Shown: piece after piece, positions 1 through 7,040 of the stretch | How positions within the stretch are numbered: position 1 is the stretch's first letter | Layout of the letters: every line of letters starts with the position of its first letter | From: Paraphysomonas bandaiensis | Taxonomy: Eukaryota > Protista > Chrysophyceae | Direction: 5' to 3' | DNA length: 8,241 bases | Assembly (NCBI GenBank): GCA_965644295.1 | Contig: CBFFRP010000596.1 | Location: forward strand, 1 to 8,241 | The notes under the pieces: generated by a model | The model's database searches: none | What the model saw: the letters and a program-made list of their open reading frames with translations, nothing else | What the model was told of the DNA's origin: nothing | Translations under genes and position numbers: made by a program

Positions 1-14
1 AATATATGTATATA

Positions 15-2034
15 CCCTAACCCTAACCCTAACCCTAACCCTAACCCTAACCCTAACCCTAACCCTAACCCTAACCCTAACCCTAACCCTAACCCTAACC
101 CTAACCCTAACCCTAACCCTAACCCTAACCCTAACCCTAACCCTAACCCTAACCCTAACCCTAACCCTAACCCTAACCCTAACCCTAACCCTAACCCTAA
201 CCCTAACCCTAACCCTAACCCTAACCCTAACCCTAACCCTAACCCTAACCCTAACCCTAACCCTAACCCTAACCCTAACCCTAACCCTAACCCTAACCCT
301 AACCCTAACCCTAACCCTAACCCTAACCCTAACCCTAACCCTAACCCTAACCCTAACCCTAACCCTAACCCTAACCCTAACCCTAACCCTAACCCTAACC
401 CTAACCCTAACCCTAACCCTAACCCTAACCCTAACCCTAACCCTAACCCTAACCCTAACCCTAACCCTAACCCTAACCCTAACCCTAACCCTAACCCTAA
501 CCCTAACCCTAACCCTAACCCTAACCCTAACCCTAACCCTAACCCTAACCCTAACCCTAACCCTAACCCTAACCCTAACCCTAACCCTAACCCTAACCCT
601 AACCCTAACCCTAACCCTAACCCTAACCCTAACCCTAACCCTAACCCTAACCCTAACCCTAACCCTAACCCTAACCCTAACCCTAACCCTAACCCTAACC
701 CTAACCCTAACCCTAACCCTAACCCTAACCCTAACCCTAACCCTAACCCTAACCCTAACCCTAACCCTAACCCTAACCCTAACCCTAACCCTAACCCTAA
801 CCCTAACCCTAACCCTAACCCTAACCCTAACCCTAACCCTAACCCTAACCCTAACCCTAACCCTAACCCTAACCCTAACCCTAACCCTAACCCTAACCCT
901 AACCCTAACCCTAACCCTAACCCTAACCCTAACCCTAACCCTAACCCTAACCCTAACCCTAACCCTAACCCTAACCCTAACCCTAACCCTAACCCTAACC
1001 CTAACCCTAACCCTAACCCTAACCCTAACCCTAACCCTAACCCTAACCCTAACCCTAACCCTAACCCTAACCCTAACCCTAACCCTAACCCTAACCCTAA
1101 CCCTAACCCTAACCCTAACCCTAACCCTAACCCTAACCCTAACCCTAACCCTAACCCTAACCCTAACCCTAACCCTAACCCTAACCCTAACCCTAACCCT
1201 AACCCTAACCCTAACCCTAACCCTAACCCTAACCCTAACCCTAACCCTAACCCTAACCCTAACCCTAACCCTAACCCTAACCCTAACCCTAACCCTAACC
1301 CTAACCCTAACCCTAACCCTAACCCTAACCCTAACCCTAACCCTAACCCTAACCCTAACCCTAACCCTAACCCTAACCCTAACCCTAACCCTAACCCTAA
1401 CCCTAACCCTAACCCTAACCCTAACCCTAACCCTAACCCTAACCCTAACCCTAACCCTAACCCTAACCCTAACCCTAACCCTAACCCTAACCCTAACCCT
1501 AACCCTAACCCTAACCCTAACCCTAACCCTAACCCTAACCCTAACCCTAACCCTAACCCTAACCCTAACCCTAACCCTAACCCTAACCCTAACCCTAACC
1601 CTAACCCTAACCCTAACCCTAACCCTAACCCTAACCCTAACCCTAACCCTAACCCTAACCCTAACCCTAACCCTAACCCTAACCCTAACCCTAACCCTAA
1701 CCCTAACCCTAACCCTAACCCTAACCCTAACCCTAACCCTAACCCTAACCCTAACCCTAACCCTAACCCTAACCCTAACCCTAACCCTAACCCTAACCCT
1801 AACCCTAACCCTAACCCTAACCCTAACCCTAACCCTAACCCTAACCCTAACCCTAACCCTAACCCTAACCCTAACCCTAACCCTAACCCTAACCCTAACC
1901 CTAACCCTAACCCTAACCCTAACCCTAACCCTAACCCTAACCCTAACCCTAACCCTAACCCTAACCCTAACCCTAACCCTAACCCTAACCCTAACCCTAA
2001 CCCTAACCCTAACCCTAACCCTAACCCTAACCCT
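15..2034 (+). repeat. Telomeric array (CCCTAA)n / (TTAGGG)n, about 336 perfect units
   Basis: Uninterrupted CCCTAA hexamers from 15 to 2030 (2016 bp = 336 units) plus CCCT. C-rich strand on +, the orientation expected at a left chromosome end. Confidence 0.98.
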
Positions 2035-3217
2035 TACTATGAAGTGTGTATGTTATATATGTTATATATAGGTATATATGTGTATATATGAAGTATATAT
2101 TGACTTACTATGAAGTGTGTATATATATATGTTATATATAGGTATATATGTGTATATATGAAGTGTAAATTCGCTTACTATGAAGTGTGTATATATATAT
2201 GTTATATATAGGTATATATGTGTATATATGAAGTATATATTGACTTACTATGAAGTGTGTATGTTATATATGTTATATATAGGTATATATGTGTATATAT
2301 GAAGTGTAAATTCGCTTACTATGAAGTGTGTATATGTTATATATATGTTATATATAGGTATATATGTGTATATATGAAGTATAAATTCGCTTACTATGAA
2401 GTGTGTATGTTATATATATGTTATATATAGGTATATATGTGTATATATGAAGTATATATTGACTTACTATGAAGTGTGTGTATGTTATATATGTTATATA
2501 TAGGTATATATGTGTATATATGAAGTGTAAATTCGCTTACTATGAAGTGTGTATGTTATATATGTTATATATAGGTATATATGTGTATATATGAAGTATA
2601 TATTGACTTACTATGAAGTGTGTATGTTATATATGTTATATATAGGTATATATGTGTATATATGAAGTATAAATTCGCTTACTATGAAGTGTGTATATAT
2701 ATATGTTATATATAGGTATATATGTGTATATATGAAGTATATATTGACTTACTATGAAGTGTGTATGTTATATATGTTATATATAGGTGTATATGTGTAT
2801 ATATGAAGTATATATTGACTTACTATGAAGTGTGTATGTTATATATGTTATATATAGGTATATATGTGTATATATGAAGTATATATTGACTTACTATGAA
2901 GTGTGTATGTTATATATGTTATATATAGGTATATATGTGTATATATGAAGTATATATTGACTTACTATGAAGTGTGTATGTTATATATGTTATATATAGG
3001 TATATATGTGTATATATGAAGTGTAAATTCGCTTACTATGAAGTGTATATGTTATATATGTTATATATAGGTATATATGTGTATATATGAAGTATAAATT
3101 CGCTTACTATGAAGTGTGTATATGTTATATATGTTATATATAGGTATATATGTGTATATATGAAGTATATATTGACTTACTATGAAGTGTGTATATGTTA
3201 TATATATGTTATATATA
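2033..3217. repeat. Subtelomeric tandem satellite, 70-75-bp unit, 16 full copies plus 1 partial
   Basis: Unit is approximately CTTACTATGAAGTGTGTATGTTATATATGTTATATATAGGTATATATGTGTATATATGAAGT(ATATATTGA | RTAAATTCG). Starts at 2033, 2104, 2174, 2244, 2315, 2390, 2463, 2536, 2607, 2678, 2748, 2819, 2890, 2961, 3032, 3103, 3176. A degenerate remnant (TTGACATACTTTGAAGTGTG) extends to about 3273. Confidence 0.97.
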
Positions 3218-3302
3218 AATGAAGTCAAAAATGAAGTGTTTGTAAGTCAAAAATTGACATACTTTGAAGTGTGATGCTTCTGATATTCTTTGGGTTTTCG
3301 CT

Positions 3303-3346
3303 GGGGTTAGGTTGGGGTTAGGGTTGGGGCTAAGGTTAGGGTAGGG
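3303..3346 (+). repeat. Degenerate telomeric tract in inverted orientation (TTAGGG/TTGGGG variants), G-quadruplex-compatible
   Basis: GGGGTTAGGTTGGGGTTAGGGTTGGGGCTAAGGTTAGGGTAGGG. G-rich strand on +, opposite to the terminal array; six runs of at least 3 G. Confidence 0.85.
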
Positions 3347-3352
3347 TATATG

Positions 3353-3641
3353 ATATCTCAAGAACTATGACGAGTTAAAAAAAAGTAAACATATCAGTAA
3401 ATTCAGCGTACCCATATTATTCTTGTAAAAACCTATGACCTTCACCTATAAAGCTTTTTATAAAAAGTTAGGAGCTCACACCTCTATCTAACCTTAACCG
3501 CACCCCATAAAAATAATATCTCTGGAACTACGGGGTAATAAAAATTAAAAAATATATCAGTAAACGCAGAATACCCACATTACTCTAGTAATAAAATACG
3601 ACCTTTGCCTAAAAAAATTATTCTCATAAGTTATGAGCTCA
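3353..3641. repeat. Diverged direct duplication, period 163 bp (3353-3478 and 3516-3641)
   Basis: Collinear shared blocks ATATCTC..GAACTA, ATATCAGTAAA, TACCCAyATTAyTCT.GTAA, GACCTT, AAGTTA.GAGCTCA. ATATCTC at 3353/3516 and GAGCTCA at 3472/3635, both offset by 163. Confidence 0.85.
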
Positions 3642-3792
3642 AAACGCTCACAGAGCCGTATTCACTGTATTCTATGTATTCTATATCAAGAATAATGCGC
3701 GATGGTAAACTTACTTTTTTTGATTGGCTTAAATTTGATTGTTAAACAGATCCACACCTCAAATGGGTAAGGAGCGATCGGGGGACAGCGTA

Positions 3793-3842
3793 TAACCCTA
3801 ACCCTAACCCTAACCCTAACCCTAACCCTAACCCTAACCCTA
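3793..3842 (+). repeat. Interstitial telomeric tract (TAACCC)8
   Basis: Eight perfect TAACCC units at 3793-3840 plus TA, same orientation as the terminal array. Confidence 0.95.
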
Positions 3843-3885
3843 GACCCCAATCTTTTTCTCCCATGCTCCGACGCACAACTTCCTC
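3842..3885. repeat. Exact 44-bp direct copy of coding sequence 4975-5018, inserted in telomeric repeats
   Basis: AGACCCCAATCTTTTTCTCCCATGCTCCGACGCACAACTTCCTC occurs identically at 3842-3885 and 4975-5018. Confidence 0.97.
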
Positions 3886-4095
3886 TAACCCTAACCTCAA
3901 ACGTGTCTTGCTATTATACTATTAGGCCTTATCGTTTAATCTTTATCTCTAATAATATCAAGTATATTCTTACTAAATATCAAGACTAACCTTAAATCTT
4001 ATTTTAACCCTAACCCTAACCTTAATCGCATACAATTGAGAACAGAAAACCTTAGCAAATAATGTCACCTTCTGTTAAACAATCCAAACCCTAAC
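3886..4095 (+). repeat. Eroded telomere-like region with scattered CCCTAA/CCTTAA units
   Basis: TAACCCTAACCT (3886), CTAACCTTAA (3986), TAACCCTAACCCTAACCTTAA (4005-4025) and AAACCCTAAC (4086), separated by AT-rich sequence that partly resembles decayed hexamers. Confidence 0.7.
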
Positions 4096-4184
4096 TATTC
4101 GATTAAGTGAGTGTACCGGTTATATTATACACTATTATTCACTATTGATTGACGGCACAGTACAAGAAAATTACTAGTTTTCTG

Positions 4185-6395
4185 CTAGTTACCCTTATTA
4201 TTGGAATTTTGCCATGAAGTTGAGCGTTCGTTATCTTCATCCTCATCAGTTTCATATTCACTCGCATCTTCATCCTCATCACTTATACCTTCATCCTCGT
4301 CACTTCCATCGTCACTCTCATCTTCATCCTCATCACTCTCATCATCTGCAGAGTTCACATCTTCGGCTTCACATACTTCATCGCAATCAAAATAACACTT
4401 CACGCCGCAGGAACGAGCCCACTCAACAACACAATTCGGCCACTTCTTGTACAGCCACCTCCTATCACGGATGGTTACATTATTCCTTCGCAAAAAGGAT
4501 GAAGCTTCGGGAGTAAGCGGCCTCGTGGTAACCAAATACAAGGCATGTGAGAATTCTATATCCGTGTAGGTCTTACGCAAGCATTCAATTACACCTTCCC
4601 CACTCTTCAATTTTTTTAACACTATTCGAGCTGCACATACGCCAAAACTGCCATGTCCCAGTTTAATTTGCAGTCTATGTACACAACAATGATTCTTGTC
4701 GCTTGATTTCATAATAGAATCTGGTCCAATGGTCTTTTCCTTATCACCTTCATTATCAGCTGATTCTACTATGTTACAACATTCACCTTTTTGGAACACC
4801 ACTACATCAGCACCTCTACAGTCCGGAATTTCTTGCAGCGGGATGCCATAAGGTAAAGAACTAAACTCAACAGGAAATTGTATCCTACGAATTTTCAATC
4901 GACTCTTTCCTTCAAATATCAACTTCATCTTTCTGCCGCCACGGCTTTGGCTGCTTGGGAATTTAATTGGACCGAGACCCCAATCTTTTTCTCCCATGCT
5001 CCGACGCACAACTTCCTCAGCTCTCATCCCTAAAATGGAGTAGGGGTACCGCAGACACACTCTCATGTGTGAGGTAAACCAGCGCGGCCACGCAGGTCTG
5101 ACAGGTTGCTCCCTCAGAATTAGACAGGCAATTGGATGAGAGAATTGAAGAGTGTCGCGTTCATTAGTTTGCTGATAAAGAAACGCTCCGCTGTCTGACC
5201 CTTCATAGAATACTCGCGGATTGCTATCCGATAACCCTTCTAGATCATTCACATCAATTGGCGCCATCAGCCTCCATGGATCGGAATACAAGCCAGCCAG
5301 ATGCACCCCTTCCTCATCAGGAAATAACGTTCGTAGCATAGCATTTAAAATTCTTTCATACCTTTTGCGATGCTTCGTGATTTTGAAACAAAATCTATTT
5401 GAATATGTTGACATTAGTAGTTTATCCTTTCTGCGTACGATTCTTCTGTAAGCAGAAAAATTTCTCAGATACCCTCCTGTGTACAAATAGAAATTGCATA
5501 ACTGGCGAGGCGTGGGACGTTTCCCAAACAATTGGTGGTACGCCTCTATGAGGTCACTTTTGAGATAGAGTGGCTTGATATCGATAACATGGAATCTGTC
5601 GCTGTTTAGATTATTGGCTCTTCCAGAGTATGACGGGAAATCTCTCCTCGAAATGTCATCCAAAACCATTTTACCAAAACATAAACTGCGGAGATACGGA
5701 GCACTCCCAGACAATATAACATTTACTGGATTGCTTGAAGAAGACCAATTCCCAATGGAGGATAACTGCATAATCCATTTCCTGCCCTGCTCTGCAGGCA
5801 GTGTGTAAACTATAGAGTATTCATCAAGCACAAGGAATACGCGCCACTTCATTTTCTCCAAAAAGATCATCAATTTCTCCAAATTTCTCAAACGAGTCAA
5901 TTTAAGCGCATTCAACGCTTGCCAAGCATCATCTGGTAACATCTTCTCAAAAATGTCAAATATCAAATCATATGGACCTTCTCGATGCAAATGCTTACTG
6001 ACGTTAATATAAGCAGACAGCGTTGCCTTTCCAAGCTTTTGCATTGCAAAAACAAGACCTTGAAGAAAGGAAGTTTTGCCAACACTTTTTGGCCCTATGA
6101 CCAGGTGATTGGAAGAGTTTCCAGTTAATTTTCCAGAGTCAAGATCACGCAGTATCAACGACAATTCGGCCACAGCGTCAGTTCTATCCGAGTATAGCAG
6201 CATTCGACCATCTTCGGTACGAACTTCCCGCAGAATATTTTCGATGGCTTCTTGAGCATCACTCTTCAACAAATCATTGACTTCTTTTCGGACCCACCTT
6301 TTCTTGACATCATTAGTCGGTGTCATCGGAATCCTCCCATTGATGCCTGCTTTTAAAAAAGGGCAGAGAAAATCTGTGGTGGGATTGGCTATCAT
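4185..6395 (-). CDS. P-loop NTPase (STAND/AAA+-like) fused to Mrr-like PD-(D/E)xK restriction-endonuclease-fold domain with acidic tail; Crinkler/RHS (CR) effector-like, 736 aa
   Basis: Uninterrupted ORF. Walker A GPKSVGKT (aa101-108, nt 6072-6095), Walker B VFLVLDE (aa186-192), sensor-like VILSGS (aa226-231), TGGYLR (aa306-311, resembles the STAND GxP region). Nuclease-like motifs: GMRAEEVV (E460), PDCRGADVVV (D525/D530), RLQIKLG (Q576-x-K578), and LYLVTTRPLTPEASSFLRRNNVTIRDRRWL resembling the Mrr_cat C-terminal pattern. D/E-rich tail about aa670-725. The CDS itself is secure; the family call is inferred from motifs. Confidence 0.8.
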   Translation of the reverse strand: MIANPTTDFLCPFLKAGINGRIPMTPTNDVKKRWVRKEVNDLLKSDAQEAIENILREVRTEDGRMLLYSDRTDAVAELSLILRDLDSGKLTGNSSNHLVIGPKSVGKTSFLQGLVFAMQKLGKATLSAYINVSKHLHREGPYDLIFDIFEKMLPDDAWQALNALKLTRLRNLEKLMIFLEKMKWRVFLVLDEYSIVYTLPAEQGRKWIMQLSSIGNWSSSSNPVNVILSGSAPYLRSLCFGKMVLDDISRRDFPSYSGRANNLNSDRFHVIDIKPLYLKSDLIEAYHQLFGKRPTPRQLCNFYLYTGGYLRNFSAYRRIVRRKDKLLMSTYSNRFCFKITKHRKRYERILNAMLRTLFPDEEGVHLAGLYSDPWRLMAPIDVNDLEGLSDSNPRVFYEGSDSGAFLYQQTNERDTLQFSHPIACLILREQPVRPAWPRWFTSHMRVCLRYPYSILGMRAEEVVRRSMGEKDWGLGPIKFPSSQSRGGRKMKLIFEGKSRLKIRRIQFPVEFSSLPYGIPLQEIPDCRGADVVVFQKGECCNIVESADNEGDKEKTIGPDSIMKSSDKNHCCVHRLQIKLGHGSFGVCAARIVLKKLKSGEGVIECLRKTYTDIEFSHALYLVTTRPLTPEASSFLRRNNVTIRDRRWLYKKWPNCVVEWARSCGVKCYFDCDEVCEAEDVNSADDESDEDEDESDDGSDEDEGISDEDEDASEYETDEDEDNERSTSWQNSNNKGN

Positions 6396-7040
6396 TTAGT
6401 CCATCACTGCCGAGATCAATGGTGACAATTTATGCTGAACTATTGACGAAAGAAAACATTATTGAACTCTATGCGTAACTACAGTCGAAATATCATCTGA
6501 TTCAATTGCTTGCTTGGAGTGGTTGGATACTGATAGAACTTTTTTCATACATATCTGCTTTACGTTTTTCCGTACTGTATATTGATATGTACAGTATGTA
6601 CAGTATATGTGTACGTAAAAAAAAACAAATTCATTTCACTGAAAAAAATAGCATTGTGATGTTGTACATAATAATAATTAGAAAAAATTGATCATACCCA
6701 AAAATCCACCTTTTTTAAGAAAACCCCTATCAACTCTCCATATCCCATACCGTTTTTTGGTGTTGAAGACAGATCGTTTCACCACAATCATGTCGTTTTT
6801 TTGAATCTTGAAGGGGTGTCCACTGATTTTAGAATTTCCACTGGATGAGATTGGCATGCTGAACGTCACACCATAGAATTTGTGCCTTCAAAAACATGCC
6901 TTTCAGCGACTGGACCGAAGAAGTGCCAACATCACATCCCTCAAACGAACTTAAAGGAAGTCAAGTCCTATGAATAACTGTACAAACTAAGAGCAATTAC
7001 ACTTTACTTTTTTTAGAATTTATAATGTTTCTCTAGTATA
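6396..7040. promoter_or_regulatory. Intergenic region between divergent genes, presumed promoter region
   Basis: About 645 bp of AT-rich DNA between head-to-head start codons; positional inference only, no specific element identified. Confidence 0.4.

Follow-up and report, generated by a model that had tools for sequence, protein, structure and literature searches.

A 44-bp copy of a neighbouring gene between telomere repeats at a chromosome end of Paraphysomonas bandaiensis is probably filler DNA from end repair

Introduction

Retrotransposon cDNA is captured at chromosome breaks and at eroded telomeres, as with the yeast element Ty1. Templated insertions and mosaic ends are found at dysfunctional telomeres, both in Caenorhabditis elegans survivors (PMC8034613) and in Chlamydomonas telomerase mutants (PMC10620057). 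The TALT cassettes of C. elegans serve as templates for alternative lengthening of telomeres (PMC8034613). In vertebrates, the TERC-ITS are telomere-like repeats at breaks, flanked by sequence reverse-transcribed from the telomerase RNA (PMC2246262, PMC8537989). Interstitial telomere tracts are known to be fragile sites (PMC11626172).

Here we describe an exact 44-bp piece of a gene lying between telomere repeats in Paraphysomonas bandaiensis. The window, which is the whole stretch of DNA that was analysed, comprises 8,241 nucleotides and is the chromosome end on contig C596 of a 62.5-Mb assembly with 669 contigs. A sequence-only reading of the window had proposed two models for the piece, a templated insertion followed by telomerase healing or a spacer-like memory cassette. 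The anatomy of the piece, comparable inserts on contigs C579 and C442 and the neighbouring pieces support the first model, and the second finds no support. We put the probability at about 0.7 that the 44-bp piece is filler DNA from chromosome-end repair, re-capped by telomerase and later buried, with no function of its own.

Results

The chromosome end is built in layers

The window is an end in layers, each layer consisting of a short non-telomeric piece with telomere repeats on its distal side. From the tip inward it holds the telomere, a 71-bp satellite, a shared subtelomeric element (STE), short pieces alternating with short telomere tracts, an open reading frame (ORF) and a KH-domain gene. 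The features are the following.

14-2034, plus strand (C strand on plus): terminal telomere of about 337 perfect CCCTAA repeats
2033-3217, no strand assigned: AT-rich subtelomeric satellite, 71 bp, 16.5 copies, directly beneath the terminal telomere
3302-3347, minus strand: degenerate, telomere-like and inverted tract (G-strand orientation), marking where the shared element has its distal edge
3360-3792, plus strand: STE, its right edge on TAACCC repeats
3793-3841, plus strand: interstitial telomere tract, (TAACCC)8 and a T
3842-3885, plus strand: exact direct copy of 4975-5018, 44 bp long; its plus strand reads antisense to the gene, its G strand mRNA-sense
3886-3897, plus strand: short telomere tract TAACCCTAACCT, 12 nt, its final CT shared with the following LTR sequence
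3898-4004, plus strand: last 107 nt of a 260-bp LTR (family A), sense orientation
4005-4022, plus strand: short telomere tract, inside a contig of sequencing run X1 with 0 differences
4023-4035, plus strand: possible degenerate TAATCGAATAGTT linker, a weak match at 9 of 13 bases
4036-4077, plus strand: last 42 nt of a second high-copy LTR (family B)
4078-4094, plus strand: degenerate telomere-like tract
4095-4107, plus strand: linker motif in the opposite (G-strand) form, CTATTCGA and TTAAG
4110-4184, minus strand: start of the ancestral DNA, homologous with the 3' flank of a paralog on contig C135
4185-6395, minus strand: intact ORF of 736 amino acids, transcribed toward the telomere
4975-5018, minus strand: source of the 44-bp copy, codons 460-474, a predicted helix before the nuclease-like core

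Homology with the C135 flank begins only at 4110, so all the material distal to this position was added. Within 200 bp of the 44-bp copy there are at least two more pieces, and the sequence-only reading was wrong in seeing only one such insert. Contig C80 carries the same 71-bp satellite, there behind a telomere tract and a linker. [quoted passage not shown]

The 44-bp copy comes from the neighbouring gene

Positions 3842-3885 and 4975-5018 are identical at 44 of 44 bases, in direct orientation and 1133 bp apart, which cannot be a chance match. In the whole 62.5-Mb assembly the 44-mer is found only at the source, at the insert and, with two mismatches, in the C135 paralog, making the window's own gene the donor. 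The first base of the source is also that of codon 460 in the minus-strand ORF; the encoded peptide is EEVVRRSMGEKDWG, with two bases belonging to the following codon. One base at each junction is attributable to either partner, leaving a piece of 42-44 bp. The basic anatomy had been described correctly from the letters: the (TAACCC)8-T tract, the identity to 4975-5018, the 1133-bp spacing and the encoded residues (460-474) all match the assembly, as do the telomere-like G-strand end of the piece and a CCCTAA at 5028-5033. The perfect identity had further been taken as a sign of recency or active maintenance, which is a weak argument. Compared with its family, the neighbouring family A piece (3898-4004) has diverged by about 1-2%, a rate that would leave 44 nt unchanged about half the time, so the identity is no proof of recency.

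At the distal junction (3841/3842) the piece and the C-strand repeats on its distal side overlap by 1 nt, fitting de novo telomere addition, where overlaps are 0-4 nt. The G strand of the piece terminates in GATTGGGGTCT right before the repeats, a G/T-rich seed. Judged by sequence, repeats that abut with a 1-nt overlap on a G-rich seed would be the signature of de novo telomere addition. The microhomology is 1 nt at each junction of the 44-bp piece and 1-2 nt at a similar piece on C579, and overlaps of 1 nt do not separate polymerase priming from blunt ligation. The 8-nt linker TCGAATAG, which is present at C579 and C442, is absent from both junctions of the 44-bp piece. Given this absence, we infer the telomerase step at the window junction from its geometry.

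Priming of the copy at the CCCTAA that lies 10 nt beyond the source (5028-5033) was considered and rejected, as the 9 nt between are missing from the copy.

Support from sequencing runs

The assembly is the sole source for the 44-bp insert. Sequencing runs were compared with it as Logan short-read contigs, leaving out the repeat at 3787-3852, and among the Logan contigs listed none spans 3804-3895. The public short-read contigs break at the repeat beside the insert and neither confirm nor refute it. Contigs of run X1 cover 3600-3786 and 3977-5100 with 0 differences, including the tract at 4005-4022 and the second LTR piece. A single X1 contig spans 3977-4810, also with 0 differences, showing that the adjacent layers are not assembly noise. 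One observation goes against the insert: an X1 contig (4786-5019) crosses both boundaries of the source without the breaks that would be expected of an unsimplified k-mer graph given a second context. The end of this contig at 5019 is due to k-mers in common with the C135 paralog and is thus uninformative on the insert.

A second haplotype was considered for the variants at 5025-5065 and rejected, since the C135 paralog has exactly these bases. The runs containing the sequence bear labels of coded organisms or of marine or seawater samples.

It is quite improbable that the insert is an assembly artefact, with a chimeric or mis-polished long read having put a gene fragment into a telomere tract. 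The insert has no read-level support and lies on a subtelomeric fragment, one of the 669 contigs of the assembly, both of which an artefact would suit. Set against this are the exactness of the copy, its clean junctions in telomere register, the same architecture on independent contigs and the flanks that short-read contigs confirm with 0 differences.

Similar pieces lie at other chromosome ends

We surveyed about 15 chromosome ends for comparable structures. Contig C579 carries a 26-bp exact direct copy of unique DNA from 1632 bp further in, with a 22-bp telomere stub on one side, the 850-bp terminal telomere on the other and the TCGAATAG linker beside it. Its source is within an intact kinase/PH-domain ORF. 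As C579 copies a kinase gene, the coding content of the 44-mer looks incidental. On contig C442 a 58-bp direct copy, 97% identical, comes from unique DNA about 1.8 kb further in and lies between tracts. All three unique-sequence pieces (those of the window, C579 and C442) are in cis, direct and 26-58 bp long, with sources 1.1-1.8 kb further in. Pieces of other kinds are also found: C80 has a 203-bp piece identical to C573:6185-6387, C467 and C519 have pieces of high- and middle-copy repeats, and transposon pieces are present at other ends. Telomere repeats adjoin each piece distally with an overlap of 0-2 nt.

Erosion, patching and re-capping thus recur in the P. bandaiensis genome. The sequence-only reading had considered that the insert might be a one-off repair scar with no counterpart at other ends; the inserts on C579 and C442 show that it is not a one-off. 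Their unrelated self sources and their irregular sizes and spacers argue for repair and not for function.

The C442 locus (146597-146692) has a further peculiarity. The 58-bp piece is followed by a linker-like CTACTCGA and a G-strand repeat, which stands head to head with C-strand repeats. The structure looks like a fragment healed at both ends and fused to a short telomere.

A shorter course of events would be the alternative end joining of a break inside an already internal tract, with filler taken from 1.1 kb away and with neither a terminal nor a telomerase stage. This one-step repair requires fewer events than the loss and regain of the distal element. It agrees with the two junctions of the 44-bp piece, both of telomere repeat against filler, with 1-nt overlaps and without the TCGAATAG linker, and interstitial telomere tracts are known to be fragile (PMC11626172). 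We nevertheless regard it as unlikely. The C579 piece is directly beneath a terminal telomere, with a linker, and represents a terminal event; the layer stack of the window and the truncated-and-healed ends described below show that terminal cycles occur.

Could the piece instead be what is left of a tandem duplication of the 1133-bp unit 3886-5018, by sister fusion or unequal exchange, whose distal copy eroded to its last 44 bp and was healed? The right junction, from 5018 to 3886, is exactly the one that a tandem duplication predicts. However, the three independent cases all keep fewer than 60 bp of units of 1.1-1.8 kb, and by our estimate the chance of this is about 6 in 100,000 if truncation points are uniform. 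All three copies being 26-58 bp long, a result that random truncation of a large duplication rarely gives, we consider such a remnant very improbable.

A shared element and its truncated tails

The STE (3360-3792) recurs at 96-100% identity on C12 (twice), C467, C119, C80 and C573. It always stops at the same proximal base, followed by 2-14 TAACCC repeats. This constant edge on a telomere tract, together with the 96-100% identity, is expected if the STE is spread by recombination primed in the tracts. Tails of the STE, 34-138 bp long, lie between tracts on C12, C579, C80, C441 and C442; they have the proximal edge in common and vary at the distal edge. On C299 and C325 the terminal telomere is placed directly on a 40-bp STE tail, which is the plain state of truncation and healing. 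From these edges the tails would fit repeated truncation and healing, followed by re-acquisition of the STE through recombination primed in telomere repeats. The STE itself behaves like a template cassette that is copied between at least six ends.

On C467 the STE is truncated within the inverted telomere-like tract and healed with the linker. A second subtelomeric family is found on C612, C591 and C519, about 70% identical and arranged in tandem units of 307-350 bp. These units are parted by telomere tracts of up to 200 bp, and some open with the TCGAATAG linker. Its constant proximal edge and variable distal truncation also led us to consider the STE as a telomere-targeting (Penelope-like) retroelement. 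We dropped this idea, as a reverse transcriptase could not be found and the pattern is explained by ends being truncated, healed and recombined in cycles.

The neighbouring pieces are ends of LTRs

The family A piece (3898-4004) ends at base 260 of the 260-bp LTR. This is the exact 3' terminus, with the primer binding site beginning next in the 5' LTR copies. More than 350 copies of the family A LTR are present, in pairs 5.37 kb apart, and both LTRs of one element are identical. The family B piece (4036-4077) ends at the terminus of its LTR, where copies diverge or the primer binding site starts; in an RNA contig the bases after this terminus are the primer-binding-site-like TGGTAGCGG. Only as extrachromosomal linear cDNA or strong-stop DNA does a retrotransposon expose its LTR termini as DNA ends, which favours free-fragment capture for the LTR pieces. 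The LTR pieces likely originate from a free fragment that was captured by end joining onto a very short telomere and then healed.

Family A is a young Copia-like LTR retrotransposon with a TGGCAGCGGATG-like primer binding site, and its LTR is present in RNA contigs of a marine metatranscriptome.

For the 44-bp piece we find the corresponding origin, a free double-stranded fragment of debris or cDNA that was end-joined onto a very short telomere and then healed, rather improbable. If fragments were captured at random, their sources should be anywhere in the 62.5 Mb and in either orientation, whereas all three unique pieces are from the same end, 1.1-1.8 kb in and direct. There is also no natural DNA end at 4975 or 5018. 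The capture of a fragment would be in keeping with the two LTR pieces that end exactly at LTR termini, with the near-blunt junctions, which suit ligation, and with C442, where the piece is bracketed by linker-like sequence in opposing orientations, as though each 3' end of a fragment had been extended.

A linker beside telomere repeats

The TCGAATAG linker follows telomere tracts at 18 of 46 distinct junctions among the loci examined, and 13 of the 18 healed ends beside it finish in A. The linker, whose extended form is CTAACCCTAATCGAATAGTT, lies where telomere tracts meet unrelated DNA. Across the genome there are 103 occurrences of the 14-mer CCCTAATCGAATAG versus 0 for the reversed control, with about 0.5 expected for a random 14-mer. 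Of these sites, 36 are isolated and internal without a second repeat, mostly as CTAACCCTAATCGAATAG; the six that were inspected have unrelated flanks. A telomerase RNA was sought among these 36 sites (six inspected) and none stands out. Two environmental contigs have the linker beside telomere repeats, other exact-pattern matches in metagenomes being mostly chance and in coding DNA.

By analogy, the linker may be copied from the telomerase RNA next to the template. If this is true, CUAACCCUAAUCGAAUAG is expected at the RNA template, and the linker would be a handle for finding the telomerase RNA of the P. bandaiensis lineage.

The donor gene and its paralog

The 736-aa ORF codes for a P-loop (STAND/AAA-like) NTPase with a C-terminal PD-(D/E)xK-type nuclease-like domain and a long acidic tail. 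The motifs E..PD..GADxVV and QIKLG are conserved in 13 relatives. The predicted nuclease-like core has a pLDDT of 76-95. By fold it comes closest to Mrr-like and restriction nucleases, with a Z of 5-7.3, which is below the decisive level. A Pfam search of the ORF gave only sub-threshold AAA matches and no nuclease match. The label of nuclease, given to the gene from the letters, thus agrees with the conserved motifs and the confident core of the model and finds no backing in Pfam or in a decisive Z; a nuclease is plausible as the predicted product. The copied segment had been called the predicted first helix of the nuclease domain. The model places a helix there, just before the nuclease-like core.

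Among 5.8 billion proteins the ORF has only two close relatives and 184 distant ones. In architecture it is reminiscent of NTPase-nuclease immune sensors. A match to 4068-6477 in a JGI transcript contig, at 97.5% and free of introns, and one to 4192-5100 in a polyA metatranscriptome, at 100%, indicate that the donor gene is expressed. The C135 paralog (C135:238-1359 and 9194-9792) is a pseudogene with many stops, 85-89% identical, which a 7.8-kb insertion divides in two. Telomere repeats with the linker are found at the far end of C135.

The layers do not resemble a memory array

The pieces do not form regular repeat-spacer units of foreign origin. Every traced source is self DNA, and for two short pieces (21-22 bp) no source was found. 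In the cassette model, a transcript through the telomere-flanked pieces would silence or guide the nuclease gene or retrotransposons. Several pieces do stand in a row, and from their orientations a telomere-directed subtelomeric transcript would be antisense to the 5' ends of the two LTR RNAs. The same transcript, however, would be sense and not antisense to the gene. The sources are unrelated, namely the nuclease gene, a kinase gene, non-coding DNA, LTR ends and subtelomere tails; the pieces (about 22-203 bp) and the tracts (11-200 bp) are irregular. The polyA metatranscriptome that covers the gene at 100% identity has no RNA contig on 3804-3895, although contigs cannot show absence. Taken with these points, a functional cassette is scarcely credible.

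It is also conceivable, at very long odds, that the layer stack is a transcribed trap locus. TERRA-like transcripts antisense to the captured 5'-end pieces of LTRs could then feed small-RNA silencing of active retrotransposons, and gene pieces, the 44-mer included, would be taken up incidentally and could modulate the gene beside them. If this were true, chromosome ends would be an adaptive memory of mobile-element activity.

Discussion

A route from a telomere stub to a buried patch

Under the reading of the 44-bp piece as filler from end repair, the telomere would have been eroded or broken to the 12-nt stub at 3886-3897. Its G-strand 3' end would then have been lengthened by a brief round of DNA synthesis, with the C strand 1.1 kb inward as template, either on the looped-back chromosome itself or on its sister chromatid. 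Synthesis would have halted after 44 nt at the G-rich 3' end TTGGGGTCT, where telomerase would have built a new telomere, the donor gene being left untouched. The new telomere would later have shortened to eight repeats and been buried, when the STE, the satellite and a further telomere were copied over from another end by recombination primed in the telomere repeats. The transposon layers could have formed in the same way, except that the patch would be the ligation of a free retrotransposon cDNA end in place of templated synthesis.

More speculatively, the C strand may have been resected by 1-2 kb, with the looped 3' tail invading just past the resection point. Synthesis would then reach the resected 5' end within a few dozen bases and run out of template, which would explain both the distance of the source and the short length of the copy.

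If the filler reading is right, the genome holds a base-by-base record of chromosome-end repair in a wild, telomerase-positive marine microbe. The record would consist of short copies from 1-2 kb in, retrotransposon cDNA ends and truncated subtelomere tails, each re-sealed. Such mosaics have mostly been described in telomerase mutants, and finding them in a genome of the ordinary kind suggests that ends are routinely lost and patched. For annotators it would mean that exact gene fragments in subtelomeres need no function.

Comparison with known systems

CRISPR arrays and piRNA clusters also consist of short captured pieces parted by repeats. The layers here differ from them in being self DNA with irregular sizes and spacers, with no transcript seen in RNA contigs and no associated machinery identified.

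Closest to the window are chromosome healing, the templated insertions and mosaic ends of telomerase mutants, the TALT cassettes and retrotransposon cDNA capture. As in Ty1 cDNA capture, the pieces at 3898-4004 and 4036-4077 end exactly at LTR termini. The 44-bp piece, in contrast, is from a single-copy gene and has no natural end at its borders. Its position, unique sequence near a chromosome end with telomere repeats on both sides, is like that of the TALT cassettes (PMC8034613); unlike them it is not amplified, the assembly having only the source and one copy. It is the STE, copied to many ends in one orientation, that resembles TALT. The TCGAATAG linker recalls TERC-ITS (PMC2246262, PMC8537989), as it stands beside telomere repeats, at ends and at isolated internal sites, in a way that resembles the copying of template-adjacent RNA. 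The junctions of the 44-bp piece, unlike TERC-ITS, are without the linker.

In chromosome healing, repeats are likewise placed directly on unique DNA with an overlap of 0-4 nt and a G/T-rich seed, and C299 and C325 are in the same state. The healed end in the window is an added 44-nt filler, however, and not the broken chromosome itself. Templated insertions (PMC8034613, PMC10620057) share with our locus a short exact copy of nearby DNA at a junction, within a mosaic of subtelomere pieces and interstitial tracts. For polymerase-theta filler the typical distance to the template is shorter than the 1.1-1.8 kb seen here, where the copies are also always direct (n=3). The published templated insertions are from telomerase mutants, whereas P. 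bandaiensis has an ordinary genome with long perfect telomeres, and its junction was re-capped by telomere repeats instead of being fused to another end. What sets this locus apart from the known systems is its combination of an ordinary genome with long perfect telomeres and recurring cis-templated pieces, each sealed by new repeats.
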